A stretch of DNA of 64,000 nt from Macrostomum lignano (GCA_002269645.1 NIVC01000712.1:310001-374000); one strand, 5' to 3'; shown: positions 7,403 through 50,670, numbered from the stretch's first letter. Made by a program: numbers and translations. Notes: a model not told the origin generated them from the letters alone.

Positions 7403-7403
7403 G

Positions 7404-7449
<46 letters not shown>

Positions 7450-17673: not shown

Positions 17674-19165
17674 CTTACTTACTTACTACTGACGGGGGGC
17701 GCAGGCGCCGCGAATAGGCCGCGAGGCCCCTATCGCAACCCCAAGGTAAAAGAGCACAAGGATTAGCCTTGGGGGTGCGCCCAGTCCCCGCCAGTAGTCG
17801 GCAGGTCCGCAGTGGAGGCATCGGCGACCCTCATCCGGCCGGAGTCCCGGACGAAGGCGCGGAGGTCTCGGATATTGTCCGCGGTGGTCAGCTCGTCCAT
17901 CCGCTGGGGGTGGCCGAGGTATTTGTGCCGCGCCTTGTTGAAGTAAGGGCAGAAGGTGACGTGATGCTCCGCGGTCTCCTCTCCTATGCCACAGAAGGGA
18001 CAGGTGGGAGGGCAACCGGTTTGCAACGATATATGTCTCTGGAAGAATCCGTGGCCGGTTAGGACCATGCACATCTCCCTGAGGTCGGTTCTGTTAAGCG
18101 AAATCAGATAATCAGAGACTTTCCTGTTCAGGTTAGGCATGGCAGAGCGGCTCTGCCTGTACTCGGTGCAGCTGTTCCAGTGGAGCTGGTGCTGCTGATG
18201 GAGCCACCTGTTGATATGGCGGGTGACTTGCGACCTGGGGGTGGGTAGCCTCATCAGACGGTGGTTGCCGTCTGGGTTGCTGCCCTCCTTGGCGAGAGAG
18301 TCCGCGAGCTCGTTGCCCAGGATGTTGCTGTGACCAGGTGTCCAGATAATTCTAATCCTGTTAAGGACTGAGAGAGATTGCACACTGCGGTGGCATTGAG
18401 ATACTGTAGCAGCGGAGATATTCTCAGTGGTTAAGGCCTTAATAGCAGCTTGGCTATCAGTGTAGAAATTAATGTCAAAATTATTAATGTTCGCCTGAAA
18501 CAGTTGCTGGGCACACTGCTCAATGGCGCAAATTTCAGCTTGGAAAACTGAGGTGTTCTCACCGAGGTGCAGACTTTCCTGGAGAAGCATCTTACCCTCG
18601 TGGAAAATGGCAATACCCGCTCCAGCGCGGCCGTTGAACAGCGAGCCGTCGGTGAAGCAGTGAATGCCCTGGCTGCGCCGGTTCACACCGACATCCAGCG
18701 GAATGTTGTCTCGGCCAGGGATGGCGGTCTTGAAGCCCCTCCTGATGTTGAGGGCGGGAGGTCGACTATCCACATTGCCCAGGTCCATGTGGATGTTGTT
18801 AAGGTCGCGGCGGACAAAGTCCATATGCGGGATTAATGTTTTCATTGGCATAAAGCCAGAGGGCGCGTTATTTAACGTTTTATCTCTGATAAGCCGGGAG
18901 GCAGACTTCATAGCCTCCGCCCTAATAAATAGGTGAAGCGGAGGTAGGTTAAGGATAGTGTTCAGCCCCTCGTAAGGGGTGGACGGGTACGCACCTGTGA
19001 TGGCACGGCAAATGCTGCCCTGAAGCTGGTACAGCCGCTGACGGGCGGCCTTCTGCTCCAGCACGCTAGTCCAGATGAGACTCGCGTATGTGATACTGGG
19101 CCGGATGATGCCGGTATAAATCCAACGGACCGTTCTAGGCGAGAGGCCCCAAGTCGGCCCGATGG
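17674..19165 (-). mobile_element. 5'-truncated non-LTR retrotransposon (Loa/R1-group-like) with RNase H, CCHC finger, (TAAG)n tail and a 14-bp TSD
   Basis: gtaaatactcgtta at 17660-17673 and 19166-19179; (ttac)n on the + strand at the 3' end; open frame throughout. Confidence 0.9.
17763..19165 (-). CDS. C-terminal part of LINE ORF2: RT thumb/connection, RNase H, CCHC zinc finger
   Basis: [29 protein letters not shown]; FTDGS; [11 protein letters not shown]; FYTDSQAAI; [21 protein letters not shown]; LTGHG; [15 protein letters not shown]. Confidence 0.9.
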
Positions 19166-19309
19166 GTAAATACTCGTTAAAACTACTTCATAGTTAGTAG
19201 CTGATAGGAGCATAATGCCATTTGTTTTATCTTATTCAATATAATAATTTATTAGATAACAAGCTACCAATTAAGTTTCCTGTGAAAACGACAGCTTTCA
19301 AGGTTCACA

Positions 19310-27920: not shown

Positions 27921-30900
27921 TCAGTTGATTGAAGTAGCGCTTTCAGGTATCGGAATCGGCTTTGAGCTGCTGTCCTTGTAGTACTCTTTGTACTTGACAA
28001 ATGTGCACCCATCCAGATCATAGTGACCCGACGCCGTCGTGAACATCAAGCTGTCACTGTTTGAATCTTCGCTATCGGAGCCACTTGATGCGTCATACTG
28101 GTCTGTCACCTGATCGATTATTTGCAACACCTTTGCGAACTCGATAGCTGGCTTGCTTGACGTCTGGAATATGAGAGGCGGTCATTGAGGTCATGAAGGG
28201 TCACTCTTGTCATGAAGGGTCACTCTTGTCATGAAGGTTCACTCTTGTCATGAAGGTTCACTCTTGTCATGTTCACTCTTGTCATGAAGGCTCACTCTTG
28301 TCATGAAGGTTCACTCTTGTCATGAAGGTTCACTCTTGTCATGAAGGTTCACCCTTGTCATGAAGGGTCACTCTTGTCATGAAGGTTCACTCTTGTCATG
28401 AAGGTTCACTCTTGTCATGAAGGGTCACTCTTGTCATGAAGGTTCACTCTTGTCATGTTCACTCTTGTCATGAAGGCTCACTCTTGTCATGAAGGTTCAC
28501 TCTTGTCATGAAGGTTCACTCTTGTCATGAAGGTTCACCCTTGTCATGAAGGGTCACTCTTGTCATGAAGGTTCACTCTTGTCATGAAGGTTCACTCTTG
28601 TCATGAAGGGTCACTCTTGTCATGAAGGTTCACTCTTGTCATGAAGGTTCACTCTTGTCATGAAGGTTCACTCTTGTCATGAAGGTTCACCCTTGTCATG
28701 AAGGGTCACTCTTGTCATGAAGGTTCACTCTTGTCATGAAGGTTCACCCTTGTCATGAAGGTTCACTCTTGTCATGAAGGGTCACTCTTGTCATGAAGGT
28801 TCACTCTTGTCATGAAGGTTCACCCTTGTCATGAAGGTTCACTCTTGTCATGAAGGTTCACTCTTGTCATGAAGGGTCACTCTTGTCATGAAGGTTCACT
28901 CTTGTCATGAAGGCTCACTCTTGTCATGAAGGTTCACTCTTGTCATGAAGGTTCACTCTTGTCATGAAGATTCACCCTTGTCATGAAGGTTCACTCTTGT
29001 CATGAAGGTTCACTCTTATTATGAAGGTTCATTATGGTCACACAATTTCACTCTTGTTGAGATTCACTTAGATCATGCAGGTTACTCATGTGTTCACATG
29101 TTACTTCCTGTCACTAACTAAGTGCTAAGTCATTAACTAAGTGCACTGAAAAGCACACAAGTATCATGCCCTGGAAGCTTACTTGGCAGCGTACGGTATT
29201 TTGATGCTGTTTATTGTCGCGCGGTACAGTGTCTATTACCAGTCAATTGTTATATATAAGTTTGGTCAGGCAGGCTTCAATAATATCTTGCTTGGCTACT
29301 TATAGAAATCTTTCAACAGCAAAAGCTGATGTGCAGTTTTGCGTCATATGCAAGCTGTTTGCATTAGAAGTTAAAATCTTCACATGTAAACTTGGGAATC
29401 ACATGCCTAACTTGTAGGGGTATTAGCAAGGGGCCGAGTAGAGCGAATTCAAGACCAATGAAAACTGAGTTTAAAGAAACATGAGGTGTACAAGCACACG
29501 CCTGACTATGAGAAAGGAAGTGCCTGTGTTAGTGTACGTATCTGCGTAAGCACTTTGCCTGCATGTAGTCCGCTAAGGGTTTACCCAAATGAGCATGACT
29601 GCTTGTGTCCCAGCTGGCTCCGGATTGACTGTCCGTATCAGCTCAAATGAGACCAGTTCGGTCGGGAGCATGCGGCCTAAAGGACATCTTCTAGGAAGCT
29701 GTGAAGGTGATTGGAAAGTAACACGCAAACTACTCAGGTTTAATTTATTGAGGTTCCGGATGATGGAATAGTCTGTGATTGCAGCCGCTATAGTATATGC
29801 TACACGCATCATAACAGCTTTCATACAAATCTGCATGTGCTTGTAAATACCTGCTGAGTACTGTAGCTCACTTGCTGCTCAGACTGGCCATCGCTGCAGT
29901 CCGCCTGCGGGATACTTCCTGCCAAGTCAGCCAGCTGGCTTTCGCCATTGCTATAACCGCTAGTCGCTTGCTTTGCGGTGACGTACAGGCAGACACCGGT
30001 GACCACCAGGATGAACACTGAAAGCAGCAGGCTAACTGCTCCAATCGCGACTGCCGCGTAGGTTCTTCTAGGAGCGTTCGGATCGGATTCGCTGCTAGCT
30101 TGGGGCTTCAGCGTCAACGGAAACGGTTCAGAGCGGCTGATGTTGTAAACTGTTGTTCCTCGAAACGTCTGCCTTCCGCTACACTGGATTCTCACAAAGA
30201 TGCTGCTCCATAGCAGCGCCAGAGGAATCTTTGCGAGCTTCCACCGCTGAGTTGACGTTTGCTTCATGTTCTGCACGCTTGTGTTGCAACCAAAGTCAGC
30301 TGTGCACTGCACATCGGAAACATTCCATCCGGAATCTGCTCTTGTGACCATGACGGACATGTTTCTGTCGTTCAACTCTGGTGGGGATATTTTCATGCTT
30401 GTTTTGTCTGAAATGGCGGTCACAAATACATCTGACAATGAGCTTTGAATTTATCAAGTGTACAAAGAATCAGTGAGCTCACAGAAAACTGCAGGCAGTT
30501 GATTGGCGCTGGTCTCTACGTCTGGGTACTCGACTCCTGACTGGTTGACCTGGCAGCGCACCAGCCATCGGCTCCGGGCCATCCACCGGCTCACCCACAG
30601 CTGGTGCTCGCTGCTGAAGTCTGCGCTCTGAGGATGGATGAGAATGATTGTTACATTTACCTTCAACTCGAGTTTAGTAATTTCAACTACGTAACTACAG
30701 AACATTATTATGCATAACACGAAGTACAACAATACTGGTACTTCATTACAAATAGTTGACTTCTTAGATTTCCTCTAACCAGAAACTGCAGCTCCTCTGT
30801 CAATAAGCAGTCAGTACAACGCAAACCGAGTCATAAAATTTACCTGAACTTTCTTGAGCAGCTGGGAGAATGGAACTGCCGAGTCAATTAACCAGCAGCT

Positions 30901-33347
30901 GTGGCTCACGGGCCAGAAGCTGCAGCTGTCTGACCTGACCCTGACTGTCCTGACCTCGTGCTCACGCCAGAACTCGGCCTGCTCAAACTCAATCCGCGTC
31001 ACACAGGGCTCTGGAGAGAAAAGACGTCGGAACTGTGCGCTGGATGGTGTGCCAAATAATTCAGATTGTTTCTCTCATTGGCTTACCGCTAATAGCTGCG
31101 ATGCTGTGACGTTTCGCTACAGAGGTGACACTTCCAGTTGTTGCAAAACTTTCTTTGCAATTAATGTAATTAGCCTTCATCCACTTCGACACTGTGAAGG
31201 TAAACGTGGACTTCACAGAAAAGACAGGCAGGTTTTCCGAGTTCCAAGTGATATTCCTTTCCTGCGAATTCGATATTGAGTGAGAGAATGTGAAACACAA
31301 TGCAGGATAAATCTGCCAAGCAGAACTTGGGTTGCTTACAATGACTGCAGCTGTCAGAACCTCAGCCTGTGATGAAGGTGCATTCGAACTGCTAGCTCCG
31401 ATCCAGCACACGTGTCGCGGCTCCGGAGAAGAGTCTGTGGTGATGAAGCTGACGGAAGCTGTTCTTCCGGACACCAACACATCGGGAGGCGAAATTTCTG
31501 ACTGAATTGGCGGAACTGAAAAGCGAATTTCTGGTCTCGTATTACAGAGCGGCTTTAGTGGCTCCAATAAAAACATTGTGAGCTGAACTCACTTCTCAAT
31601 AGCAGCATTCGCTCAAGTCTTGTATCTCTTTGACGTCCTCGACTGCAGCTGAGCAGTGCGCCCTGATGCTCCAAGCTCGATTTGAATTCAAACATTTGCT
31701 GACATTCTTCATGGATCGTTCGCAACTACAATGCCAGAATTTCTCTCTAATCGGAATTATACCGAATGAAAATTGATGTTCATGAAAACCTACATGATTG
31801 ACCCTGAATTGTTTTCCATTGCGGTTCCGTATGCTGCAGTTAAGCCTTGAGCTGGTGGTTTTTAAGCCACAGTCCCGCACGGAAAAGCAGATGGGATCGC
31901 CGACAGAAGATTTTCCGATGTTGTCCAGACTGGTGCACATGGGAGTGTCAACGTCAAGCAGCTGCAGACAGGCGGGTCGACCTGAAAAAGGCGCGAGTTG
32001 ACTACAGAACTCCAGACCAGAATCAATAATTTGAGCGCATTTACCTGTCAGGTTGAGTGCAGACCACTGCAGGTCGCCTGAGCTGTTCTTCAGAAGAATG
32101 AAGGACACTAGGACCTGCCAGTCAAGTTTGATAGCATTGGTCTTCTGAAGGCATTAACTAATATCTTAATGCATGCAACATAAGACAACAGGTCTGTGGT
32201 GACTACCTGGACATTGATCTGTCTCCACCGGTCGCTGCTGCCGTAGGTCTCCCAGCTGGCCCGGCACGGATCCTCCAGCTGCAGCTCCAGCGGGAGGCTC
32301 GAGGCTACGACCGCTGACACGGGCGAGCCGACCGGAGCTGCTGCGAGCCACTGGCCATCTGCAACACGAGTGCTTGGCTGCTAGCTGGTCTCACACTGTG
32401 TCAGAGTGCTAATTAGATGCTAGCTGGTCTCACACTGTCTCAGAGTGCTAATTTAGATGCTAGCTGGTCTCACACTGTCTCAGAGTGCTAATTAGATGCT
32501 AGCTGGTCTCACACAGTCTCAGAGTGCTAATTAGATGCTAGCTGGTCTCGCACTGTCTCAGAGTGCTAATTAGATGCTAGCTGGTCTCGCACTGTCTCAG
32601 AGTGCTAATTGGCTGCTTGCAGGTCTCACACTGTCTCAGAGTGCTAATTGACTGCTTGCAGGTCTCACACTGTCTCAGAGTGCTAATTAGATGCTAGCTG
32701 GTCTCACACTGTCTCAGAGTGCTAATTAGATGCTAGCTGGTCTCACACTGTCTCAGAGTGCTAATTAGATGCTAGCTGGTCTCACACTGTCTCAGAGTGC
32801 TAATTAGATGCTAGCTGGTCTCACACTGTCTCAGAGTGCTAATTAGATGCTAGCTGGTCTCACACTGTCTCAGAGTGCTAATTAGATGCTAGCTGGTCTC
32901 ACACTGTCTCACACTGTGTCCCAGACTCCCTCTGCCTCATCATGCATCATGAGAATGAGTCGGTCAGCGTCACTCACCCCAGTCTCGCACGCTCACCGCC
33001 TCCAGCATCATCGGCTGCCTCAGCTGCATCACAAGCCACCGAGGCCCGGACCGCACAGCAGCAGGGAATCGGTTTGTCTCTGACTGCCGACTCTCCCACC
33101 AACGGCAGTGCGCACCGCTGGGTTGCCAGGTGCGCAGAACGTCAGCCCTGCTCAGCTGCACTGTGACTGAAACATTTTGACTCAGCTGTCAGTATCTGTG
33201 GTTTTCGATTAAAGTTTTTCAAAACCTGCATATTCTGACATAGATCATCAGCTCACCTTCATGTATTGCGTCAGTGCATTGGGCTTCTGCGCTAGAGACC
33301 CGAAGGCTCAGCAGCGCCGGCAGAAGCAGCCAAATCTGCTGCTTCAT
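27921..33347 (-). CDS. Type I membrane protein, receptor pair copy 1: signal peptide, F5/8C-like segment, degenerate C-type-lectin-like region, TM, Ser/Tyr-rich tail
   Basis: Exon 1 (33347-33257) MKQQIWLLLPALLSL; further phase-consistent exons; TM AVAIGAVSLLLSVFILVVTGVCLYV in the exon ending at 29872; putative terminal exon 28163-27921. Some internal exon borders are unresolved and domain names rest on motif resemblance only. Confidence 0.65.
28190..29030. repeat. Minisatellite, 19-bp unit (tcatgaaggttcactcttg)
   Basis: Direct reading. Confidence 0.96.
32380..32912. repeat. Minisatellite, 39-bp unit (agtgctaattagatgctagctggtctcacactgtctcag), about 13 copies
   Basis: Direct reading. Confidence 0.95.
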
Positions 33348-34106
33348 GTTAGCATGGAGTGTCCCAGCGACCAATGTTGTCAGGGTTAAAGTTTATAGCT
33401 GTAAAAATCTCAGATAATTAACCGCAGTTCATGCCACCAGTTAGGTGCAAGGTAAACAAACTTCAAACTGATTGATGCAATGAACTGCGAAACTGTACAC
33501 TTGTGTTCACGCACAGATGTTTTTACCCTGCTTTTAGGAGCGACGTATCCAACAAGCTTTGCCTCCTTCGTTTATGATTTATCGTTTATGAAAAAATGAA
33601 ATGAAACGAGTCGAAAAACTTAGCCTAACCAATTTGCCTTTGACTCCCTATTGCGGCACGACATGGATGGTCGCTCGCGCGGTAGCCTCTCAGGTAGCAG
33701 ACAAGCTGGCAGAGATTCTCGGGCCTGAAAACATCTGAAATGTTCCGGTTTCGAACAGAAGTGCGGGAACTATAAACTACCTGACGTGACGCGAAAGTCA
33801 GGAATCGAATGTTGTTTGAACGAGTGTAAATTCTTGCGATATATTTGCAGTAGTAGAATAGTCTAAGTTGCTTGACGAGACACAGATCGAGAGCAATGGT
33901 TTAAATATTGCGACTATTGAAAATATTGAAGTGGAGTATTGAACTACATTGATGCACTGCGTGATTGAGCAAGTGGAGGGACTTAAGGGGCGAGGCAAGG
34001 CTAGAGCAATGATGTACACTGAATTGCACAGAGTACGCATTGGTTTACAGAGTACATAGAAGTTTAGCATTGAATAAAGTTAAGTGACGGAGTTAGCAGA
34101 ATAAAG

Positions 34107-34440
34107 TTAAGCAAAAAACCGCACACAGTTACCCATGCTAGCAAACCAACGAACCGTCACTTCACTACCTACATCAAACGGATAGGTGAGCCTGTCATGA
34201 GTAAAGGCGGGGCATTCACAGATGAAGTGCTCCGGATTCTGAACGCGGTGAGAGGCCAGAATGGGCAAACCAAACTGTAGATTTTTACCTGGAGGTAGTG
34301 ATACCCGGCTAAACAGCCATGACCCGAGAGGGCCAAGGTCACCTTCCTGATGTCCGTGTGGTAGAGGCCTTGCAGGTCCTTCAAGAGGGCAGGAGAGGGA
34401 CATTGGACAGCCGCGTGGGATTGCTGGCAGTCAGGGGTGC
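34107..34440 (-). mobile_element. Decayed 3' fragment of a Loa/R1-like LINE ORF2
   Basis: Frameshifted LALSGHGCL...CPFW...[12 protein letters not shown], matching the LTGHG / CxxC..ETxEH...CP pattern of the 17.7-kb element. Confidence 0.6.
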
Positions 34441-34479
34441 TAGCCTAATTCTCTGTTCTTAGAAGCCACCTTCGGTGCT

Positions 34480-35365
34480 TGGACATGCCTCTGTAAGGGT
34501 AGAAAAGGAGCTTTGGACATGGCTCTGTGGGGGTAGAAGAGGAGCTTTGGACATGGCTCGGTGGGGGTAGGAGAGGAGCTTTGGACATGCCTCTGTAAGG
34601 GTAGAAAAGGAGCTTTGGACATGGCTCTGTGGGGGTAGAAGAGGAGCTTTGGACATGGCTCGGTGGGGGTAGAAGAGGAGCTCTGGACATGGCTCTGTGG
34701 GGGTAGGAGAGGAGCTTTGGACATGGCTCTGTGGGGGTAGAAGAGGAGCTTTGGACATGGCTCGGTGGGGGTAGAAGAGTAGCTTTGGACATGGCTCTGT
34801 GGGGGTAGAAGAGGAGCTTTGGACACTGAGAATAGAAGAGGAGCTTTGGACACTGATAATAGAAGAGGAGCTTTGGACACTGAGAATAGAAGAGGAGCTT
34901 TGGACACTGATAATAGAAGAGGAGCTTTGGACACTGAGAATAGAAGACGAGCTTTGGACACTGAGAATAGAATAGGGGCTTTTGATATCGCTCTGTGGGG
35001 GTAGAAGAGGAGCTTTGGACACTGAGAATAGAAGAGGAGCTTTGGACACTGATAATAGAAGAGGAGCTTTGGACACTGAGAATAGAAGAGGAGCTTTGGA
35101 CACTGAGAATAGAAGAGGAGCTTTGGACACTGAGAATAGAAGAGGAGCTTTGGACACTGATAATAGAAGAGGAGCTTTGGACACTGAGAATAGAAGAGGA
35201 GCTTTGGACACTGAGAATAGAAGAGGAGCTTTGGACACTGAGAATAGAAGAGGAGCTTTGGACACTGAGAATAGAAGAGGAGCTTTGGACACTGAGAATA
35301 GAAGAGGAGCTTTGGAACTGAGAATAGAAGAGGAGCTTTGGACACTGAGAATAGAAGAGGAGCTT
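34480..35365. repeat. Compound minisatellite: 34-bp unit (agctttggacatggctctgtgggggtagaagagg) grading into a 27-bp unit (agctttggacactgagaatagaagagg)
   Basis: Direct reading. Confidence 0.95.
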
Positions 35366-36753
35366 TTGAGAATGCTTTTGTGCTCTGAAATCGCTCTGTG
35401 GTTCTTCTCAATTCTGAGCTCTCGTACTAGCTGATGAGAATTGAAGCTGCTTTAATCCATTCAATTTTTTTCCAGGAGAATCAATATTCAGAATTGATGA
35501 GTGAGAAATCCGCAAGTAAGAAGCAGATATGGCAACTCAATTTCCTGCACAACCTTCTGTTGCTTCCACAAAGATGAGGAAGCATCTTCCTCTTCCGCTG
35601 TACATCCTGTGTAAGTGTCTTTAGGCAGACGGATCCGTGTGCCTGCTTAGGGGTCAGCGAAATAGGTCTGACTGCTTGTCAGCTTGCTGTCGACTTGATT
35701 TGATGTTTTTTTACATTTTGTGCACCAGATCAACAATTCAATCAAATAAACCCTTTTGCAATGCTGTAATGTTTTTACAATACGAGTGATCAAATACCAA
35801 CTGAGAGGCATATTTGCAGGAATAAAAATTCGAATTTTGTAAATTAAAAAAGCCGACATAATCAGGTGAAGTCGGCATGCTCTGAAGTATACTTGAGTTC
35901 GATTAGAGCACCGAAAGTCTTGGGAGCTTATGATAAAACTATTATAGGGTGACGATGTTGCGACATAACAATCACGTACTTTAAAAATAAATGAATAATC
36001 AATACAGGCTAATATTAGTAGTGATTTCAGCCGCTTTTAGCCGTTTCACATTTCACTTTGCAGTAAAACGACAATTTCACACTTTCTGAGCTCTTGGTGA
36101 AAGGAATTTTCTACACAAATCGACAAAGAATGGCTGCTACTGCAAGTCCTCTAACCTTTGAAACTTCTCACAATAGCAATCCGGCCCGCTCAAGGTTTGT
36201 GTCTTTTCAAGCCTTCTTTTCTCTAGTGAGTCTAATCTCATCTCCCTTCTATTGTCTCTCCTCTCCCTTTTCTTCCTTCTCTAATCTCCCTCTCTCCTAT
36301 TTTATCTCTGCTCTTCCTCACCTACCATTTTATCTATTCTCCTTTATTCCTTGCCTCTGTTGTCTCCTCTCTCTTTTCTATTTCCTCTCCTCTCTCCCCT
36401 GCCTGGCCTGAAGTCATGCGCTGGGTTCTCTATCTGGCCATTGAGGTAAAAAAGGTTTGCTGACCCCTGGTACAGACGAACCCATTAGAAAGCATTCCAA
36501 ATAGCATTCCAAAATTACTAAAAGGAGGCTATATGATAAATTGGCCGGAAAATTTGCTTTTCTGCGAGTCTCCCCACCGATTTCCGAGTACAATATCCTT
36601 CCAATTTACTTGACCATCTAGAGAAACATGAAATATTTCCTTTTCATCTTTTTCTGGTATTTATCGGAATATAACAAATACGATCCCCCAGAAAGAATTC
36701 CTGGAGGACCCTCTCTAACTTTAGCAGTTCTTGAAGCCACAGTCAACCGAGTT

Positions 36754-39700
36754 CTATTCAAAGTGATTCACTCGAATGGTGATCTCCCAGTACTCGTCTG
36801 GATCTTCATAGTAGGTGTCGTCCTGGCTTGGATTTCGCAGCTGCAGGGCACGCTGGCTTTCCAGCATCAGGTCAGCCGGTGAAGTCTGCTGCACTTGAGC
36901 CTGGGCCACCACCCAAGCTGCCGTTAATTCTTTCTGGAATAATTAATTGCACAGAGAGACAAAACGAAAATTGATTTTCTATCGTGCCTGTCCTGTATTC
37001 TAGCATACTATAAATAAGAAAGTTAAACCTTCTAAACAACCGTGTAAATAATTATAGCAGTATAACACTATACTGTTATTAACTTCATTGCCAAGACTTT
37101 TTACTCAAGTCAGACAGGTAGCAAAGATACTAAACTATTTACCAAGGCTTAATAAACAGACGTAGCATTTATCAAGATTTGAAATACATCGTCAGTAAAT
37201 CACTTGAGAAACTTCGCCCCACCCCTTCACCTGCACGTGAACACGGCATGACAGCACTTTCTTCTGGTGGCAATTCTGAATACTAAAATAAAGCTGAAGT
37301 TCATTATTGTGATAAACTTACTGTCTGACTAAATTCGGTTTGGTACAGTATTAAGGATGCATGGCTTTCTACATAAATCTATGAGATTTTAGCATAAAGA
37401 GCCGCATCAGAGAATGACACAAAACTCTTGAAAACCATTAGAAGAGGATTCTTAGAGTTGATCAGATAAGTTTATAAATGAACAAGACTGATTTAAACTT
37501 CTCACTGAGTGTCTTATAGGCGTTAGCGATGACAAGCCTTTACGCTTGTGCTCATTAAAACTGGCTGGCGTACCTGTCCATTGACTTGAGCCTGACCAGC
37601 ACAGCGTCCTGCTCGCGGTGTTGGCTGGCAGAAGCTTCCTGTCGAGTTTGGCACATTTCTGAACCACAGGTAGACGACGATGGCACCCACCATGAGCACT
37701 CCGATCGCCAGGGTCACAACTCGGAAAATGAACACCACTTGAGTTCGCTTAGGAGCGTTCGGGTCCGATTCGTTGCTGGCTTCAGGTTTCAGAGTAAACG
37801 GAAACGTTGCAGAGCTGCTGATGTTGTAAACTGCAGTTCCTCGAAACGTCTGCCTTCCGCTACACTGGATTCTCACAAAGATGCTGCTCCGTAGCAGCGC
37901 CAGAGGAATCTTTGCGAGCTCCCCCCGCTGAATTGAAGTTCGCTTCATGTTCTGCACGCTTGTGTTGCCACCAAAGTCAGCTGTGCACTGCACATCGGAA
38001 GCATTCCATCCGGAATCTGCTCTTGTGACCATGACGGACATGTTTCTGTCGTTCAACTCTGGTGGGGATATTTGCAAGCTGGTTTTGTCTGAAATGGCGG
38101 TCACACATCCATCTGACAATGAGCTTTAAGTCATAGAGTGTACAAAAATTAGTGAGCTCACAGATAACTGCAGGCAGTTGATTGGCGCTGGTCTCTACGT
38201 CTGGGTACTCGACTCCTGACTGGTTGACCTGGCAGCGCACCAGCCATCGGCTCCGGGCCATCCACCGGCTTACCCGCAGCTGGTGCTCACTGCTGAAGTC
38301 CGTGCTCTGAGGATGGATGAGAATGATTGCTACATTTACCTTCAACTCAAGTTTAGTAATTTCAACTACGTAACTACAGAACATTATTATGCATAATCCG
38401 AAGTACAACAATACTCGTACTTCATTAAAAATAGTTGACTTTTTAGATTTCCTCTAACCAGAAACTGCAGCTTCCAGGAAAGCAGTCAGTACAATGCAAA
38501 CCGAGTCATAAAATTCACCTGAACTTTCTTGAGCAGCTGGGAGAATGGAACTGCCGAGTCGATTAACCAGCAGCTGTGGCTGACGGGCCAGAAGCTGCAA
38601 CTGTCTGACCTGACCCTGACTGTCCTGACCTCGTGCTCGCGCCAGAACTCGGCCTGCTCAAGCTCAATCCGCGTCACACAGGGCTCTGTAGAGAAAATAC
38701 ATTGGAACTTTGCACTGTATAACGTACCAGGTAATCTGTATTGTTTCTCTCATTGGCTTACCGCTAATAGCTGTGATACTGTGACGCTTCACTACCGAGG
38801 TGACACTTCCAATTGTTGCAAAACTTTCTTTGCAATTAATGTAATTAGCCTTCATCCACTTCGACACTGTGAAGGTAAACGTGGACTTCACAGAAAAGAC
38901 AGGCAGGTTTTCCGAGTTCAAAGTGATCTTCCTTTCCTGCGAATTCGATATTGAGTGAGAGAATGTCAAACACCAGCTAAATCTGCCAAGCAGAACTTGA
39001 GTTGCTTACAATGGCTGCAGCTGTCAGAACCTCAGCCTGTTCTGAGGTGCTAGCTGCTAGCTCCGATCCAGCACACGTGTCGCGGCTCCGGAGAAGAGTC
39101 TGTGGTGATGAAGCTGACGGAAGCTGTTCTTCCGGACACCAACACAGCGGGAGGCGAAATGTCTGACTGAATTGGCGGAACTGAAAAGCGAATTTCTTGT
39201 CTCGTATTACAGAGCGGCTTTAGTGGCTCCAATAAAAACATTGTGAGCTGAACTCACTTCTCAATAGCAGCATTCGCTCAAGTCTTGCTTCTTGTTGATG
39301 TCCTCGACTGCAGCTGAGCAGTGCGCCCTGATGCTCCAAGCTCGATTTGAATTCAAACATTTGCTGACATTCTTCGTGGATCGTTTGCGTCTGCAATGCC
39401 AGAATTTCTCTCTAATCGGAATTATACCGAATGAAAATTGATATTCATGAAAACTTACATGATTGACCCTGAATTGTTTTCCATTGCGGTTCCGTATGCT
39501 GCAGTTAAGCCTTGAGCTGGTGGTTTTTAAGCCACAGTCCCGCACAGAAAAGCAGATGGGATCGCCGACAGAAGATTTTCCGATGTTGTCCAGACTGGCG
39601 CATATTTGAGTGTCAACGTCAAGCAGCTGCAGACAGGCAGGTCGACCTGAAAAAGAAGTGAGTTGAGCACAGAACTGCAGACCAGAATCAATAATTTCAG

Positions 39701-40545
39701 CGCATTTACCTGTCAGGTTGAGTGCAGACCACTGCAGGTCGCCTGAGCTGTTCTTCAGAAGAATGAAGGACACTGGGACCTGCCATTCAAGTTTGATAGC
39801 ATTGGTCTTCTGAAGGCATTAACTAATATCTTAATGCATGCAACATAAGACAACAGGTCTGTGGTGACTACCTGGACATTGAGCTGCCTCCACCGGTCGC
39901 TGCTGCCGTAGGTCTCCCAGCTGGCGTCGCACGGATCCTCCAGCTGCAGCTCCAGCGGGAGGCTCGAGGCTCCGACCGCTGACACGGGCGAGCCGACCGG
40001 AGCTGCTGCGAGCCACTGGCCATCTGCAACACGAGTGCTTGGCTGCTAGCTGGTCTCACACTGTCTCAGAGTGCTAATTAGATGCTAGCTGGTCTCACAC
40101 TGTCTCACACTTTGTGCCCCCGACGCCCTTTGCCTCATCATGCATCATGAGAATGAGTCGGTCAGCGTCACTTACCCCAGTCTCGCACGCTCACCGCCTC
40201 CAGCATCATCGGCTGCCTCAGCTGCATCACAAGCCACCGAGGCCCGGACCGCACAGCAGCAGGGAATCGGTTTGTCTCCGACTGCCGACTCTCCCACCAA
40301 CGGCAGTGCGCACCGCTGGGTTGCCAGGTGCGCAGAACGTCAGCCCTGCTCAGCTGCACTGTCACTGAAACATTTTGATTCAGCTGTCAGTATCTGTGGT
40401 TTTCGATTAAAGTTTTTCAAAACCTGCATATTCTGACAGAGATCATCAGCTCACCTTTGTGTTTTGCGTCAGTGCATTGGGCTTCTGCGCTAGAGACCCC
40501 AAGCCTCAGCAGCGCCGGCAGAAGCAGCCAAATCTGCTGCTTCAT
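36754..40545 (-). CDS. Type I membrane protein, receptor pair copy 2: ectodomain paralogous to copy 1, different TM and Tyr-motif tail
   Basis: Exon 1 40545-40455 (MKQQIWLLLPALLRLGVSSAEA); exon 2 40364-40176; TM exon ending 37574 (VVFIFRVVTLAIGVLMVGAIVVYLWFR); terminal exon 36933-36754 in phase 0. Confidence 0.7.
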
Positions 40546-42139
40546 GTTAGCGAAGGAGTGTCCCAGCGACTTATTTTGCCAGGGTTAAAGTTTATATTTA
40601 TAACAAACTACAGTTTGTGCCGCCAGTAAGGTGCAGTCTAGCAAACTGCAAATCTAAATAATGGAATGCACAATGAAACTGTACACGCATGTTCAAAAGC
40701 AACATGCACAGGTAGATTGGCGAAAATTCCGTTTCGTGTTTCTGTTTAAAAAAATTAGTTTTTTTGAAATAGATTTTCTCATTAAGTTTTTCTTCTTTCG
40801 TATTCCAATTGTCAATTGTCGTATTCCAATTTAGAACGGGGCAGAATCCTCAATAAAAGTTTCATAAACCCATTTTGTAGATCCTTACCATAAATGCATG
40901 ATTCAATTGAGTTGTCTTTTCGGGGGTAACTCCTACTTGATACATATACGCGTATTTTCAAGGCTTGTGCTTTGCACATCCCTCCTGATGATATGATGAT
41001 CAAAAAAGGCAACTTTTAGCTGGTGGTTAACAAATCATTTTTAGTATTGTGGGTAGGATTATAATTTTTTATTGACAATCTTGTACAGTACTGTATGGTT
41101 CATTATAAATGAGGTAGCGGTGTATAATAATCAGCAGGTGATAGCTACATGATAAATTGATTATAGATTACATTGCTGAATACTGGATATCCGTGAATCT
41201 AACAATCAAGGACTACTTAAGTAGCTAGAAGGACGGGAGACTATGTTTCTTGGAAAATTTTAAGGGGCCGGTTTTGCGGGGAAAATACATTACGGAGATA
41301 GGAGGTTTTCATTTTTCAGCCCAAAAAACTGCTATTGCTCTTGATACCTGTAGTTTATTATTTGCCTAATGTTTATCGTTTGATATGACTTGTCCCTCTT
41401 ATAGCTCTATTGATATTCATAAAGCTTTTCGTGTCCTATGCCTAAAATTCATCAAAATGGCACAGCTAGACACCTTTTTAATATTTTGTTTCAATTTTGT
41501 TGAGCAGTTATCATGTACGATTGTACGTAGGATATAAAATTAACAGAGAATCCTGATTTTATAAACGAAAAGCTCTATAAATGTCAATCAATAGAGCTAT
41601 AAGAAAGGCACAGCATATCAAAAGATGAACATTGGGTCTGCCTTCTAGAAAGAGCGAAATAACCATTTTTTGTGCTGAAAAAAGAAAACCTCCTGTCTCC
41701 GTAATGTATTTTATTTATTATCCAAGAAACCAGTTTCCAGTCTGCCCAAGATGCCCTTGGTAACAATACTATTCGTTTCTGGAATTGATGTACGAGGGGT
41801 GTTGCAAAAGTTTCCCGATTTCCTGTAGGCAAAATCTAGGTATGATTTTCTAGGTATGAGAGTTGGTGTAAAAATCTGGAATAAATAAAATTTAACGAGA
41901 GTGAGTGAAATCTCTGAATAAAGAATTGTATTGCCAAAAATATTGAATCCGAAAATCAACAAAAATAGAAAAATGAACATCTAATGGATAATACTCTCAA
42001 AAAGGCAAAGGAATACTTCTGTGTTTGTAAACAGTTCTGGAAAGCTGGGAAGATGATTAATTAACATTTCATTGCTTCACCAGCGTGAGCGCTATTAACA
42101 TCACCTTTAATGTCCCCAGCACTGTCTCAACAGCTAAAG

Positions 42140-43402: not shown

Positions 43403-44679
43403 GTGTGTACTCAATATTGTGATTAGTATATTCTTGAAGGATGGTATGCTTCCATTACTTAATTCAAATATACTCGTGCAACGATACAATGCATAAATTT
43501 TAGTATTTTCCATTCAGGAAGTATTTTTCCACGTGACTGAGCTGTTGCTTACCTTTACAAGTCCACCACTGGACCTGTCCTTGGCTCTAAAAGTATTTCA
43601 TTCTGTTTAGAATCTTCGTTCGGAAGGTGAGCACTTTCGTCGGGATTTCTTCTGCGACGAGCTCTCTTCCAAACAAGCAATATTGCTAGAGTTAAAGCAG
43701 CAGGACGGCCACTGCAGCTGCCACTAGAATTAGCGGTGCTCGAAGCGTTTCCTGATTCGCTGCCGAGGCTTCTCTGTTGCTCAACAGCTTCTCCACCGCC
43801 AGCAGCAGATCCCGTTGGCAGTGCAGCTGGCTGCTGCAGTCCCTCTGACTCGCAGCATCGGCTACGTTTATAAAGCTTATCAAGGAGAGCGACGGCTTAC
43901 TGCAATCGTCGAATGTTATCGTCGGACTGACTGATTGATCTACAACGGCTGTTATTGAGGCGCAGGAGCCTTGGATGGGTTGGCCTGATCTGGAATCGGT
44001 CAATGCACGGCCGAATCACTACTCGTATATGCACCTGCGTGTCTTGTGCAATCGAATCATCTACAGTGCAGAGAAAAAAGCAGAAAAATAAGTGTATGGA
44101 TTGAAGTTTGAATGCAGTAACGTACAAGCGAGCAAGTGTATCTGATAGAGATCTCCAGAATACAGTATTAAGCAGACTACTAGAAGTAGTAAGACAAAAT
44201 ATATATAGCACAAACTTTATATGTCACGCGTTCATACTTCATTTTTTGCAGTTTTACCTTTTACATTAAATTTTCGAACCTCGAAATATGGTAAACGTTA
44301 ACCTGAAATCGACCAAAGTTTCACCCTTTCTATTCAATAACCCCACTTGTAGAATGATAAAATTCCTCTTGTAACCTCATCAAAAACCTGTTGAGGCCAA
44401 GAGAACTAAGAACTACGAGGCTCTGAGAGAAGTGTAAACCGATCAGTGAGCCTTTGTTGAAGCCTTTGTTATTTGATTATCGAGGGCTGCGTTATTGCTG
44501 GCCGTTATTGATCAGTTGATTTCTACTGAGTTATTGAATTTGAAGCCTCCCTATTCCTACTAAGGGATTAGATAAGATCCATTGGACTGATTCCGATACT
44601 CTTAGACGATTATTGATTTATTGATTTTGCTACCGTAGAGTAACGGATTAGGTTCACACGACTACAATTCCATAATTTC

Positions 44680-46290: not shown

Positions 46291-46891
46291 ACTTTAAACT
46301 AGAGGTCCATCCTGCATTTGGCAGAAATAAACTTGCAGAAATATTTCTTATTCAACAGCAGAATTCCCTCAGCAGCCCGCAACTTACACAAACATACTCG
46401 AATTCGACACTGAAGCCAGTCTATAACAGCCGCTAGCATTACTTCTGACCACAGAAAATAAACTGCTGCTCTCCAATCGGTAAAACATTCCAATACGAAG
46501 CGTTTGACTCAGATTTAGCGGCCTCCTGTTGGGATATGTGAGCTCTCTGGCTGTGTCTAAAAAAATTTAGTAAATCGGTTCAATGATGATGCTTAAGATT
46601 TTGACTTAACTCTTTTGAGTAACTAAACACCACACCCCAAGGGAAGGGAAGGCGGACGCGAGTGTTTGCGACTATCGAGTACATTGCGAGTAGACACGAC
46701 GGTCCAAAATCCGAAAAAATGATAGGAAAAAAGTGAAAAACAGGGGCGCGCAGGATGGCTGGGTCACGCTTGCAAGCAAATAATAAAATAAACCGACATT
46801 AAAACAGCACTCAATCGATAAAACAATAGTCGTCATTAGGATGAAATCAAAAAAGAAGAAATAAGAAAAAACACACGAGTTGAGAAAAAAA

Positions 46892-48114
46892 TCAATGCAT
46901 TTGAGTCCAAGCCAGAGGAAAAAAAGAGCAGACAGCACACCAGCTTCTTCCCGGAGCAGGCAAAAATAATAATTGTAGGCATTGAGATAGTTTTCGAACA
47001 GCCGCCAGCTGGAGGTCGAAGCCCTTCTCCAGCCCAAGGTACACCTGAACCGCCGAGCTCCGCCAGTCGCCCAGGGCCTTGACGACCGGCAGCGGCACAT
47101 CGGCGCGGAACTCCAGCGAGGCACCACCGCGTCGAAGGCTGTGAGGAGACAGAGACCGGTCTGCCAGGCCGGCACGGTGGACGACGTGCTGAAACAAGCG
47201 ACAGAACCGGGTGCCGGTCAGAGGCGTCAGGCCGCCGCTGCTTCGGTAGGCGAAGAGGTGGGCGGCAGCGGCGCGGTCGGGCTGGTTGATGCGCAGGTGG
47301 TGAAGCAGCGCTGCCACCAGGCAGAGCGGGTGCTGCGCCGCGTGCCGGAGGCGCGGAAGGACAACGCGGTGCACTCGCTGGCGAAATTGGTTCGTCTTGG
47401 AGCGCCGAATGTGCAGGATGGCCAGGTCCGTTGATACTTGCAGGTCGCCGCAGGTGACCACCTCGCCAGCTGGTGGGAACGGTTTCGAGCAGCACAGGTT
47501 ATCGCGGCGCAGGAGGTCCCAGAATCCGACCAGGACCGCCGCCCAGAAGGCTGCATCTTAAGGCTGCTGCAGGCGCAGGGTTCCTCGCAGTTTGAGGAGG
47601 TCACCCGGAGTGATGGGCGCCTTGCGCGCAGGTGGCTTGGCGAGTTTGCGCTGCACACCGTGGAGGAGCAGGTCGATGCGGGGGTCGCGAGGAAGGCCGC
47701 GGCCGGTCTTGAGCTTGCAGTGCAGGTCTGCGGCGTTAACGTTTGCACCGACGCTGGCATGCGAGGAGAGGCGGTCGGACAGCGCGATGATGTAGTGCGC
47801 GACCTGCTGCAGAGACGGTCGGGTGCTGTCGATGCGCATCTGCTTGCAGAACCGCTTCAAGGAGTCAATCTGGCAGCGGTAAGAGCACGCGATTGTCTCA
47901 GCGAAGGCCAGGTGGCAGAGCTCGCGGTAGCGCTTGCTGAAGTTCGCGCTCGGGACTTGAGGCGGGCGATCTGTAGGGCGAGAAATTCACAGGTGGCTGG
48001 CGAGAGGGTGTGCTCGCTAAGGTTGCTAAGGTCGAAGTGAACAGAGCCAAAGAGCCGGAGCAGGAAGTTTGTCAGCTCGCTGATGTCATCGGCTCGGCTG
48101 CCTAAGATCTGCAA
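46892..48114 (-). CDS. Tyrosine recombinase of the element (frameshifted)
   Basis: IRRSKTNQF, HSLRRGGA, LGDWRSSAVQVY (R-K-H-R-W-Y catalytic pattern); N-terminal KRFCKQM...LLLHGVQR...KAPITP. Confidence 0.88.
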
Positions 48115-48126
48115 TGTCCCGGGGAC

Positions 48127-49432
48127 GTGGAAGGCCTAGACGGAGAGGTAGCGGTGCGCAGCGAGGAGCATCAGCTGTTGCAGAGCCGAGTTGACGAGCC
48201 GATTTGGCGACGAGCCCTTGTTGATGGCGCCGACTGCGGCGGTGCTGTCAGAGTAGATCACAAGCCGGCTGCCCGGTTGCAGCTGCTGCTGGAAATGCAG
48301 GGCCGTAAGCACTGGCGCGATACTTTCCTTCAAGTTGATGTGCAGCGGCTCAATCTCGGTTGAGTCGCGGTGCCAGTTCATGATGAGCCAGCTGGTGGTG
48401 TCTGGGCCGCGGATGATGCCGCAGCCGCCCCAGTTGGACGCGTCGGACTCGATGGCCCAGCTGGGCCTGTTGGAACGCCAGATTTTGCCGCTGGGGGAGG
48501 CGGCCAGGCAGGCGTCCCACCAGCTAATAATCTTGCGGAGATCATTGTGTACGCGCAGTTTGTGCCGCTGCTGCGTAAGGTCGCTGAGTTCGAGCAGGAG
48601 TGCTCTCAGGAAGCACCTCCCGATGCGGACCACTTGGCAGACCCAGTTGATGCAGCCACAGAGCGATTGGAGTTGGCGCTTGGTGATGCGCTTGCGAGAG
48701 AGCGCGGACTGCAGCTGAGACTTGGTGGCGTCGAGCTTGTCCTCTGGAAGTTCCAGCAGGCCGCTGACGGTGTCGATGAGACGCCCAGGTAGACCAGTTT
48801 AGTGCACGGCGCCACCACCTTGCTCCAGTTGATGAAGAAGCCAAGCTTCCCCAGCAGATTGAGCAGAGTGTCGAGAGCGAGCTGGCTTGCGTCCTTGCTG
48901 GAGGCTGCTACGGCGAAGTCGTCCCGATAGCTGACGATATCGTTGAAACCCCGTCTCTGCATCAAACTTCCACGGAGGCAGCAGCGCCGAAGGGGAGTCG
49001 CGTGTCGCAGATGTACGAGTCGCTGCGCTGGTCGCTGAATTTCCACTTCAAGCCAGTGAGCCGAAAATCGTGCGGGCTGATGCCGACACTCCGGTAGGCA
49101 TTGGTGAGGTCGACTTTGGCCATGAACCAACCGGTTTGCAACTTGGTGGTGAAGTGACTGACGGTCTCGAACTTGATTCGGTAATCGGAAGAAAATCGGC
49201 TGTTTAAGGAGAGACGCGGAGGGTTGGAGCAGTCCTGGATGAGTCGAATCTTGTTGTTGCTCTTCGGAATGGCGCCAAGAGTACTGATAACCTCCGGTTT
49301 GTCACTGACTGGAACGTAGCGGCCATTCAGGACTTCCTCAACCAGCTGCCGGTAACTGTTGACTGATACGTGATTCGAAAGCCGTTGCGGATGCCATTCA
49401 GCAGGAATCGTCAGTCAGGATCAGGATCGTCA
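48127..49432 (-). CDS. RT-RNase H remnant of the element (frameshifts, internal deletion)
   Basis: LGAIPK..KIRLIQDCS, KVDLTNAYRSV, DTRLPFG, SYRDDF (degenerate YxDD), ESDASNWGGCG, HINLKE, YSDSTAAVGAINKG. Confidence 0.85.
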
Positions 49433-49613
49433 GTCAGCTCAGTTTCCCAGGCGGCTGTGGCGAGGTCGGATGAGAGAGCAACGGACTCGAGGGGCTTGGG
49501 ACAGGGCAAGCCGGGGGCAGCGGGGGTTCGACTTTCGCTTCCGCCGGGGCAGCTGCGCTGCCAGTTGAGCCCCCCCCCCGGCCGGCCGCGATCTAGTTTT
49601 TTGAAGTGCAGAA

Positions 49614-50670
49614 CTAGCGCGGGTGCGCCTCGTAGCAGACGTAGCAGACGTGCCTGAACTTGCAGTCGCGCCTTAGGCAGCTGTTGCGGTTGAACTTTAC
49701 GCACAGCTCCCGCCCCTCAGGATCGATCGGGCCGACGAAGCCGGACGGCTGCTGCTTTGGCCTACTGGACTTGAAGTTGGTGCGCTGGGGGATCGCGTTG
49801 CCGCCCTGATTTGATTTTGGTACGTGCCAGAATGTGCTTGGATAGCAGCTGCAGCGACTTCCGCTCCCAGTTGCCTCTCGACTGATGTTGCAGGATCCTG
49901 AAGTCTTCATCGTAACAGTTGAGGGCGGCCTGACTGAAACCCTGGTGCATAAACTCGCCGAACTGGACACAGTAGCGAACATAGGCCTTCAGCTGTTCAA
50001 GATCCACCGCGCCATCCTTAACGGTGACCAGGGGACCCTCGTCGAGGAGTTTCAGCAGGATTCGGTTGCTGCCTGCTACCCACTGACCCGCCGAGATCTG
50101 CTCAGTCCGGACTCTGGACTTCTCGCCAGAGGCAGGCTCCTCCCCATCACGGTTGATAAAGTCCTTCACCAGAAGGGGCTTTGCCGGTCCCGACGGCCTG
50201 GCAGAAGTTCTGTAGAGGCCTTGAAGGCCCAGGTCTGGCAGTCCCAGCTCCGGCTCATAGGCAGCAGTGGACCGGTCAATCGGCAAGGGGCACCGCAACT
50301 TACGGCTCTGTTGGCAAGGCTTGTTCTCCAGCTCAGCCTCGATCTCAGCAGTCTGGGGTTGGAGAGTCCTCAGCCAAAGCAGCTTCTCCTGACGGGCGAT
50401 CCTCTGTTCCAGATCGTCGGTGCCCTGCGGGGCGCCAGCCTCGTCCGGGGTCGCTTCCTCATCGTCGTCGCTGCTGCTGGTGCTGACTCGGTTGATTTCG
50501 CTAGAGTGAGTGGCTGTTGGCCGTCCACGTTGCTTGGCTTGATTGGAAAAACTGGCTTGTTCCAGTCTGACTTGCAACTCTCGCTTGCGACCGCCACTGG
50601 GCAGTCCCAGTTGGCGTAGACGGTCTCTAAGCTGCCTTGCAGTCATTTGGTCAATTGAAATCTCAGCCAT
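49614..50670 (-). CDS. Gag-like ORF with an N-terminal SAP-like motif and a C-terminal Cys/His finger (split by a frameshift)
   Basis: MTARQLRDRLRQLGLPSGGRKRELQVRL; ELCVKFNRNSCLRRDCKFRHVCYVCYEAHP. Confidence 0.8.

Follow-up and report, generated by a model that had tools for sequence, protein, structure and literature searches.

A stretch of 64,000 nucleotides from the flatworm Macrostomum lignano (assembly GCA_002269645.1, contig NIVC01000712.1), hereafter the window and the reference for all positions given, was analysed around a pair of tandemly arranged genes, copy 1 and copy 2. The NIVC00000000 series corresponds to the Mlig_3_7 assembly of M. lignano (PMC5730564). Its annotation was built from RNA sequencing data with StringTie/TACO, TBONE and TransDecoder. 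The pair occupies positions 27921-40545, from the stop codon of copy 1 to the ATG of copy 2. The initial annotation of this region had proposed a convergent paired recognition system, for immunity or allorecognition, in an invertebrate, with near-identical lectin-like ectodomains joined to unrelated transmembrane (TM) segments and cytoplasmic tails. The host is indeed an invertebrate. The data presented here make it likely that the two genes form an adjacent same-strand pair of an orphan flatworm family, with an A-type (copy 1) and a B-type (copy 2) member, that their near-identical block arose by exchange, and that copy 2 is decaying.

Self-comparison of the window revealed two direct copies, both on the minus strand, lying 7.7 kb apart within a single contig of 516 kb. 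They share a block of 3.4 kb with about 94% nucleotide identity, exons and introns alike.

30069..33509, minus strand: homogenised block on the side of copy 1 (self-comparison; 5.6% divergence, over-dispersed)
37750..40695, minus strand: homogenised block on the side of copy 2 (self-comparison)

The first aligned segment pairs 30069-32442 with 37750-40107 (93.9% identity over 2374 nucleotides) and the second one 32834-33509 with 40033-40695 (90% over 680 nucleotides). Between the two segments lies a 39-bp minisatellite, whose unit number (13.6 in copy 1, about 1.5 in copy 2) makes up the length difference. Similarity starts about 160 nucleotides 5' of the ATG and stops within the last large exon. 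No shared sequence was detected in the flanks outside the block by blastn and tblastx, and no additional paralogue of the pair was found within the window. The near-identity that had been reported between about 30070-33400 and 37752-40590, across exons and introns, is thus confirmed.

The gene models were obtained by chaining canonical GT-AG exons by hand and adjusting them afterwards to database proteins. The model of copy 1 is as follows.

27921..33347, minus strand: copy 1 gene, A-type, BOX15_Mlig028913g1 / PAA78035.1 (= P0001), 12 exons, intact
33347-33257 (E1, predicted signal peptide), 33166-32978 (E1b), 32358-32207 (E2), 32114-32045 (E3), minus strand: copy 1 exons
31981-31794 (E4), 31725-31593 (E4b), 31515-31340 (E5), 31261-31087 (E6), minus strand: copy 1 exons
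31010-30844 (E7), 30627-30483 (E8), minus strand: copy 1 exons
30407-29851, minus strand: copy 1 E9 (last ectodomain module, TM, proximal tail)
28163-27921, minus strand: copy 1 E10 (Ser/Asp-rich tail with GHYDLDGCTFV)

All splice sites of copy 1 are GT-AG with consistent phases, and P0001 is contained exactly in the model. The annotated coding sequence (CDS) covers 32359-27921, including the Ser/Asp-rich exon 28163-27921, and exon 1b was recognised via family members. Copy 1 is a 12-exon gene whose product, a type I membrane protein, has about 760 residues; exon 1 with its signal peptide stays a prediction because P0001 is 5'-partial.

A 12-exon layout like that of copy 1 was obtained for copy 2.

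36754..40545, minus strand: copy 2 gene, B-type, BOX15_Mlig011726g1
40545-40455 (E1), 40364-40176 (E1b), 40023-39872 (E2), 39779-39710 (E3), minus strand: copy 2 exons
39646-39459 (E4), 39390-39258 (E4b), 39180-39010 (E5, disrupted), 38936-38762 (E6), minus strand: copy 2 exons
38685-38519 (E7), 38306-38162 (E8), 38088-37574 (E9), minus strand: copy 2 exons
36933-36754, minus strand: copy 2 E10 (tail KELTAAW...YYEDPDEYWEITIRVNHFE)
39040..39060, minus strand: lesion in exon 5 of copy 2 (GCTAGCA duplicated in place of GTTCGAATGCA, net -5 nucleotides)

Splice sites of copy 2 are kept at those checked (E1, E2-E10); E1b was placed by fixed offset and its peptide is identical to that of E1b in copy 1. 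The lesion in exon 5 creates a TAG codon at 39052-39050, right after ...HVCWIGASS. The lesion state of copy 2 is derived, because the database proteins P0002, P0006 and P0008 read GASSSNAPSSQAEVL at this site, as copy 1 does. The annotated CDS of copy 2 covers only 38855-36754, equivalent to P0007 (366 residues); it begins at an internal Met located 3' of the lesion and is devoid of a signal peptide. Copy 2 has furthermore 12 private replacements in the ectodomain, three of which (W276L, W488G and W499R) remove a Trp conserved in copy 1 and P0002. Trp losses are thereby enriched among the private changes of copy 2 (3/12, hypergeometric P = 0.009). The lesion, exon 1b (33166-32978) and exon 4b (31725-31593) had been overlooked in the initial annotation.

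The position of the two genes and the nature of the lesion also bear on an assembly artefact, in which haplotypes or homeologues would have been collapsed or mis-joined into a tandem pair. This explanation is extremely improbable: the copies lie well apart in one large contig, their flanks are unrelated, and their TM segments and tails differ. Moreover P0003, a prediction found in UniProt only, extends from copy 2 into copy 1, with both the order and the lesion unchanged, and its out-of-frame peptide matches 39099-39010 at 100%. The lesion and the tandem order are no artefact of this assembly if P0003 comes, as we assume, from the separate and earlier ML2 assembly.

The end of the block was followed in a fixed gapless register. 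Identity per 15 nucleotides is 15/15 up to about 30155, then 11-13/15 across 90 nucleotides (73/90); in the same register 47/87 positions agree in the TM segment, and about 30%, the random level, beyond it. Similarity hence drops about 30 codons ahead of the TM, and the abrupt stop before the TM was reproduced, as was the rise of divergence toward the breakpoint. The zone of intermediate identity is explained by the conservation of the ESDPNAP stalk. The TM segments are the following.

29980..30057, minus strand: TM of copy 1 (AAVAIGAVSLLLSVFILVVTGVCLYV), uncharged, a confident helix in the AlphaFold2 model
37661..37738, minus strand: TM of copy 2 (VVFIFRVVTLAIGVLMVGAIVVYLWF), hydrophobic over 26 residues, the sixth being Arg (CGA, 37723-37721)

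The initial annotation had called these segments unrelated. The TM-coding sequences are identical at 47/87 nucleotides (54%), without gap and with equal length and register, the matches being evenly distributed over the codon positions (17/14/16). In-frame comparison with three unrelated TMs of the window averaged 24/87 and reached 36/87 at most, and codon shuffling gave a mean of 28.4, with P of about 5e-5 for 47/87. Since the in-register identity is above both controls, the two TMs are old, diverged homologues, an outcome that the initial annotation had itself named as contrary to its proposal.

The cytoplasmic parts of copy 1 and copy 2 gave no alignment. The tail of copy 1 contains acidic Ser clusters of the CK2 type and the motif GHYDLDGCTFV; both the uncharged TM and the Ser/Asp-rich tail that had been described for this copy are real, the tail exon being part of the annotated gene. 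In copy 2 a phase-0 donor at 37574 joins the exon 36933-36754; P0003 and P0007 use this exon, and P0002 and P0006 have it conserved. The resulting B tail has 88 residues, with the motifs YEDP and YWEI kept in P0002 and P0006.

A genuine paired system would require that the B-type product docks an adaptor with an immunoreceptor tyrosine-based activation motif (ITAM) via the TM Arg, that the A-type product signals oppositely, and that conversion matches the ligand-binding parts of both. The pair offers some support for it. The ectodomain is shared and homogenised including the introns, the TM segments and tails are distinct, both genes have a transcript-derived annotation, and the Arg reported within VVFIFRVVTL is present near the outer end of the TM of copy 2, where FcRgamma-coupled vertebrate receptors have theirs. 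The remaining features speak against it. A regular-expression scan of both full tails revealed no ITAM, no immunoreceptor tyrosine-based switch motif (ITSM) and no inhibitory motif (ITIM; [SIVL]xYxx[IVL], PMC3210942). The Arg is private to copy 2: copy 1 and both B-type paralogues, P0002 and P0006, have Gly at this site, and a scan of the TMs of the family identified copy 2 of the window as the sole gene whose TM core is charged; the scan further flagged a Lys at the cytoplasmic edge (P0027) and a signal-peptide region (P0032). We infer that the Arg is a change in a decaying copy and not an adaptor-docking residue. In place of the short motif-free tail of an activating receptor, copy 2 has a long tail with conserved Tyr motifs. 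No open reading frame (ORF) for an ITAM adaptor with an acidic TM was found within the window, the TMs of the other membrane ORFs (56 kb and 59.6 kb) being uncharged. Copy 2 is also frameshifted and has lost three conserved Trp, the ratio of non-synonymous to synonymous substitution rates (dN/dS, omega) between the copies is 0.48, and neighbours with mixed tails are the norm in the family.

The functional definition of paired receptors calls for one partner carrying an ITIM and another with a charged TM for an adaptor, and each of its testable features fails here. What the pair does have in common with such receptors is the close relationship of neighbouring ectodomains (94% of nucleotides over 3.4 kb) and a homogenisation limited to the extracellular part, introns included, which for the 5' cassette described below extends to the whole family. 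A charged-TM/ITIM paired receptor in a flatworm would be a striking convergence; the evidence does not support it, and we regard it as very improbable. From the earlier proposal, the mosaic structure and the exchange at the DNA level are retained, and the paired signalling is not supported. The case shows that a mosaic signature alone is not diagnostic of paired immune receptors.

Over the 12-exon model, the comparison of copy 1 with copy 2 gave dS = 0.079, dN = 0.038 and an omega of 0.48 (Fisher p = 0.002). A dN/dS well below 1 together with a lack of polymorphism had been announced as evidence against the initial annotation; the ratio is below 1, which corresponds to part of that outcome. 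In the membrane-proximal last exon, where all replacements listed earlier (W/R, W/G, K/E, C/G, MK/LQ) are present, omega is 0.39 despite many non-synonymous changes. No positive selection is detectable between the copies by dN/dS, and selection on the pair appears purifying rather than positive. Divergence amounts to 4.7% in exons and 6.8% in introns. Substitutions are over-dispersed, with a variance per 100 nucleotides of 13.0 versus 5.1 expected (P<0.0002), and cluster mainly in short introns. The longest identical tract measures 107 nucleotides and is unremarkable (P = 0.28).

Exon 4b (LRTIHEECQQMFEFKSSLEHQGALLSCSRGRQRDTRLERMLLLR), located at 31725-31593 in copy 1 and at 39390-39258 in copy 2, has particular properties. 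It encodes a charged segment with no predicted beta-strand, unlike the surrounding modules, which is partly helical in a low-confidence AlphaFold2 model. It shows the highest non-synonymous load among the exons (7.5 non-synonymous versus 1.5 synonymous changes). It is missing from the ML2 predictions P0002, P0005 and P0006 and therefore may be an alternative exon.

The history of the block was addressed by setting branch lengths in the ectodomain against the divergence of TM and tail. In a three-way comparison with P0002 over 407 ectodomain columns, 19 changes are private to copy 1, 12 to copy 2 and 21 to P0002; the two copies differ in 33 of these columns. After DPNAP, copy 2 and the B-type P0002 are identical at 64/77 residues (83%), and copy 1 and copy 2 at 24/112 (21%). 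As judged from these sequences, the ectodomain of the A-type copy 1 is as near to the B-types as the B-types are to each other, and its TM and tail are far more divergent. The pair is a true mosaic, in which ectodomain and TM/tail have separate histories. With roughly equidistant ectodomains and a divergent TM/tail, an exchange at the DNA level, introns included, is needed as the best explanation. The changes private to copy 1 concentrate in the last 30 codons of the ectodomain (SRSEPFPL versus SSSATFPF in both B-types), which therefore indicates a real exchange boundary near 30155. Among five close relatives, 14/36 informative site pairs fail the four-gamete test, performed at the amino-acid level and partly on gene predictions, which is consistent with patchy exchange. 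The split of copy 1 and copy 2 from P0002 and P0006 at eight sites was dropped as evidence of concerted evolution, since it is compatible with copy 1 as outgroup.

The same pattern could have been left by a one-off chimeric tandem duplication, in which a 5' fragment of 3.4 kb was fused in frame to the 3' end of a neighbouring paralogue, with no recurrent conversion. A single block in one piece, sharply bounded and about 5.6% diverged, would fit such an event, as would the lack of any 100%-identical tract longer than expected. The break, however, is intra-exonic and in frame, and the homology of the TMs is in register, so that a full-length paralogue is needed as recipient, which amounts to homologous exchange. 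The patchy divergence, the reticulate site patterns in the relatives and the homogenisation elsewhere in the family also argue against it. A chimeric duplication is rather unlikely.

The family to which the pair belongs was recovered by a profile search including both tail types, which yielded 33 proteins among 5.8e9 clusters, every one of them from M. lignano. An exhaustive HMMER search with the membrane-proximal module identified three real relatives among 1.84e9 representatives. Word-indexed homology searches with the exon 9 frame or with a Sec3 exon returned no relatives, whereas the two-type alignment succeeded. P0004, which matched in 17 stretches in the representative search, was discarded as an ORF of low-complexity repeats. 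The family appears restricted to Macrostomum lignano, with at least 30 genes in tandem arrays. In the papers found, neither gene identifier is mentioned and the family is not described.

Compared with copy 1, members show an identity of 27-37% along the greater part of their sequence, yet a near-invariant N-terminal module is common to them. Both copies carry the family signature, which comprises TVQLSRADVLRTWQPSGAHCRWWESRQ...DGQW.AAAPV...LEDPC, a second conserved module (ISEPC...CSIWNVSHSCWL...VRCSVNQSG), one TM and a tail from one of the classes A to D. Class A (acidic Ser cluster and GHY[DE]LDGxTFV) was found in copy 1, P0017, P0020, P0021, P0025 and P0027, and class B (YEDPDxYxxI) in copy 2, P0002, P0006, P0023 and P0024. 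Class C is characterised by ...SAYDYPS...IPSVYLVL and class D by DPVYEEV.... Classes A and B both recur on distant paralogues with very different ectodomains, and are old. The SVYLVL of another tail class was rejected as an ITIM, being a chance-level match (about 1 per 20 tyrosines by rough estimate).

The invariant module of about 113 residues (TVQLSRADVLRTWQPSGAHCRWWESRQ...RDWDGQWLAAAPV...LEDPCRASWE) is encoded by a 5' cassette that is shared family-wide. The cassette lies partly inside the span of the pair and extends well beyond its scope.

32220..33178, minus strand: family-wide 5' cassette of copy 1 (exon 1b, an intron consisting almost entirely of the 39-bp minisatellite at 32379-32911, and most of exon 2)
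39885..40376, minus strand: family-wide 5' cassette of copy 2, with short minisatellite

The loci of two distant annotated family members, L003 and L004, were used for comparison. The cassette DNA of copy 1 matches L003 10147-10975 and six sites in L004 (about 10.2k, 19.8k, 38.1k, 49.1k, 55.7k and 89.3k) at 93-97% identity. Across the family loci exon 1b is 95-99.5% identical and exon 2 90-96%. Eight cassettes spread over three contigs are 94-98% identical in pairwise comparison, and the cassettes of the window pair (98.3%) are hardly closer than those of copy 1 and a gene of L004 (98.0%). The tract begins 6-12 nucleotides or less from the acceptor of exon 1b in 7/7 comparisons and ends inside exon 2, taking in its first 115-142 nucleotides. 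Beyond the cassette, the DNA matches are limited to three of about 75% over about 100 nucleotides in exon 8 and one of 34 nucleotides in exon 7. Cassette DNA is thus 94-99% identical although the genes are otherwise about 30% identical in protein. Protein selection alone cannot fix synonymous sites and an intron, and the cassette was therefore either homogenised at the DNA level or spread very recently. This family-wide invariant cassette with its minisatellite is the most interesting element of the system. In L004 at least six genes follow one another on the same strand, their tails being of class B, unassigned, C, D, B, and so on; a change of tail from one gene to the next is therefore the norm in this family.

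Two further observations were made at these loci. The 39-bp unit also occurs as an array of about 1 kb at L003 4510-5578, upstream of the P0015 gene and with no cassette exons adjoining. The annotated P0023 'gene' of 77 kb (L004 10001-87216) spans an array of at least six family genes and has probably linked the first cassette (10.2k) wrongly to the last B-class tail (87.0k); a near-identical B tail is also present at L004 17.8k. Together with the 5'-partial copy 1, the truncated copy 2 and the read-through fusions, this mis-joined gene model is among the annotation problems to be flagged.

For the lectin-like ectodomain of the initial annotation no support was obtained: neither Pfam nor NCBIfam nor the PDB sequence searches revealed a lectin domain (C-type lectin-like, F-type, galectin, discoidin or others). 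Pfam gave no match of any kind up to E 10 on the full products, the N-terminal module and six full-length paralogues, nor on the raw frames, and NCBIfam gave none. PDB sequence searches with copy 1, a P0001/P0002 profile, the N-terminal module and a 16-member family profile returned nothing significant, and no significant internal domain repeat was found within the ectodomain. AlphaFold2 with two-sequence inputs reached a mean confidence (pLDDT) of 47.7 for exon 9 and 28.8 for full P0001, the TM helix alone being credible. Some indications point to an immunoglobulin (Ig)-like nature of the modules. About 18 members bear the automatic UniProt name 'Ig-like domain-containing protein', and the sole PDB match of the family profile was the Ig superfamily protein CADM4, at a non-significant E = 1 with both conserved Cys in register. 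Beta-strand predictions and the conserved spacing of Cys in the family modules agree with this. The Cys-containing, beta-rich modules may be Ig-like, a status to which these sequence features lend weak support.

Taken together, the favoured reading is that of an exchange between diverged tandem paralogues. The products of the family would be single-pass type I membrane glycoproteins with a signal peptide, the invariant N-terminal module, beta-rich modules, a TM and a tail of one of the classes. Exchange at the DNA level produced the 3.4-kb near-identity, which reaches from about 160 nucleotides 5' of the ATG to a point about 30 codons short of the TM, and left untouched the anciently diverged homologous TM segments and the unalignable tails. 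The tandem paralogues may have exchanged this DNA by non-allelic gene conversion or by unequal crossing-over, about 5-6% divergence ago. The same process would operate family-wide on the smaller tract from exon 1b through the minisatellite intron to exon 2. In the sequenced DV1 line, copy 2 would be transcribed; it is disrupted, with the frameshift in exon 5, the loss of three Trp and a private Gly-to-Arg change in the TM. As to function, the proteins might be cell-surface recognition or adhesion receptors, whose alternative tails could engage different sorting or signalling partners through tyrosine-based motifs or acidic clusters.

Several points weigh against this reading. Two copies cannot distinguish gene conversion from unequal crossing-over or chimeric duplication, and the invariance of the cassette could stem in part from constraint at the nucleotide level. 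Others concern the decay of copy 2. Indels are scarcer in exons (1 in about 1490 nucleotides) than in introns (5 in about 1310 nucleotides), and copy 2 was therefore probably functional until recently. The copy 2-like P0008 has an intact exon 5, and the prediction P0003 uses a splice form that bypasses the lesion; such a splice form is possible in copy 2, and the lesion may be confined to one of the duplicated chromosomes of DV1, or polymorphic. With few exon indels and the intact exon 5 of P0008, the damage to copy 2 is probably recent or limited to one of these chromosomes.

If the lesion were bypassed by splicing or present on one DV1 homeologue only, both copies could be functional and provide one ectodomain with two cytoplasmic couplings, as a loosely paired set. 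The other exons of copy 2 are all open, an omega below 1 agrees with constraint, and copy 2 shares a conserved B tail with P0002/P0006. Against this stand the transcript-based annotation, which gives copy 2 only an ORF from an internal Met that carries no signal peptide, the fact that a bypass deletes or garbles about half of one module, and the private loss of three conserved Trp. A mini-intron of 40-45 nucleotides or skipping of exon 5 was considered as a rescue of copy 2 and rejected, since the transcript-based P0001 reads this stretch as coding. Function of both copies is thus unlikely, and the decay of copy 2 is retained.

Besides the pair, the window harbours the following features.

34172-34444, minus strand: open frame between the copies, homologous to the N-terminal part of the prediction P0008
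41282-41712: foldback element of about 430 bp, resembling a miniature inverted-repeat transposable element, with nested inverted repeats (arms of 60 nucleotides at 87% and 50 nucleotides at 82%), adjoining the upstream side of the copy 2 block
43558-43896, minus strand: open frame with a TM-like stretch and then a basic stop-transfer (AALTLAILLVWKRARRRR) at its end, with no similarity to the pair
55775-56233 and 59397-59972, minus strand: two related single-pass TM ORFs of a second orphan family (31% identity, E = 8e-8), with uncharged TMs
3551-15928, plus strand: exocyst Sec3/EXOC1 gene, 924-residue product, few long exons
10779-12050, 12565-13516 and 13531-14292: three different 23-bp minisatellite arrays filling introns of Sec3/EXOC1
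46672-50676, minus strand: DIRS/Ngaro-like retroelement with a gag-like ORF; its Pfam matches to tyrosine recombinase and reverse transcriptase are weak, none reaching the curated cut-offs
17766-19187, minus strand: fragment of the type without long terminal repeats, with an RNase H domain

In P0008, the part homologous to 34172-34444 precedes a copy 2-like cassette with intact exon 5, a likeness which suggests that a second, duplicated (homeologous) version of the locus exists elsewhere. The fusion predictions P0019 and P0027 carry the module of the second orphan family as well (E = 1e-8 to 8e-4), on the N-terminal side of the cassette-family sequence, and the two families thus appear to be recurrent genomic neighbours. 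A neighbouring single-exon NADAR gene is located on the same contig. Rfam gave no match in the window.

The pair may be one corner of a larger, undescribed system of flatworm surface receptors, with dozens of tandem genes, a constant membrane-distal module kept by conversion and possibly seeded by the minisatellite, fast-diverging Ig-like middles, and interchangeable tyrosine-motif tails, a YEEV class and the ITIM-like SVYLVL among them. Such a convergent analogue of the vertebrate multigene receptors is a tentative and, on present evidence, doubtful proposal. The value of the locus lies in a clean invertebrate case of part-gene homogenisation, in which the extracellular part was exchanged and old TM/tail classes were retained. 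The family is uncharacterised and its pattern unusual, as the membrane-distal domain is normally the variable one. With transgenesis and RNA interference available, M. lignano is a tractable system for the confinement of conversion tracts and the seeding by minisatellites.

Among known systems, the Alr allorecognition family of Hydractinia consists of lineage-specific tandem type I proteins with assorted tyrosine-motif tails, whose Ig-like domains escape sequence detection and whose folds were established through structure prediction. The Macrostomum family is likewise an invertebrate lineage-specific tandem family of type I membrane proteins; it differs in that evidence of hypervariability, of allorecognition or of sequence homology is lacking.

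The closest formal description is the 'merohomogenization' of vertebrate paired opposing leukocyte receptors, namely KLRC/NKG2, KLRI, PIR and DCIR/DCAR (PMC3210942). In both cases tandem paralogues have a homogenised extracellular part, introns included, and a TM/tail with an older, separate history, and patchy patterns are ascribed to gene conversion. Unlike these receptors, the pair is devoid of ITIM, conserved charged TM residue and known adaptor, one of its partners is disrupted, and no relation of its family to C-type lectin-like or classical Ig receptors is detectable. The family-wide tract also differs, being limited to the membrane-distal N-terminal cassette and found in many genes on several contigs. 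Primate SIGLEC11 and SIGLEC16(P) are similarly adjacent genes with different TM/tails and extracellular exons made near-identical via gene conversion, and a non-functional pseudogene partner can still take part in the conversion (PMC5701461). In the Siglecs, however, V-set lectin domains are defined, one partner has an ITIM tail and the other a charged TM that binds DAP12; none of this is shown in the pair. The CEACAM genes (PMC2832619, PMC2110893) resemble the present family as a lineage-specific tandem family in rapid expansion, in which N-terminal exons were exchanged among members with different tails. The N domain of CEACAM is variable and faces pathogens, whereas the N-terminal module of the Macrostomum family is invariant.

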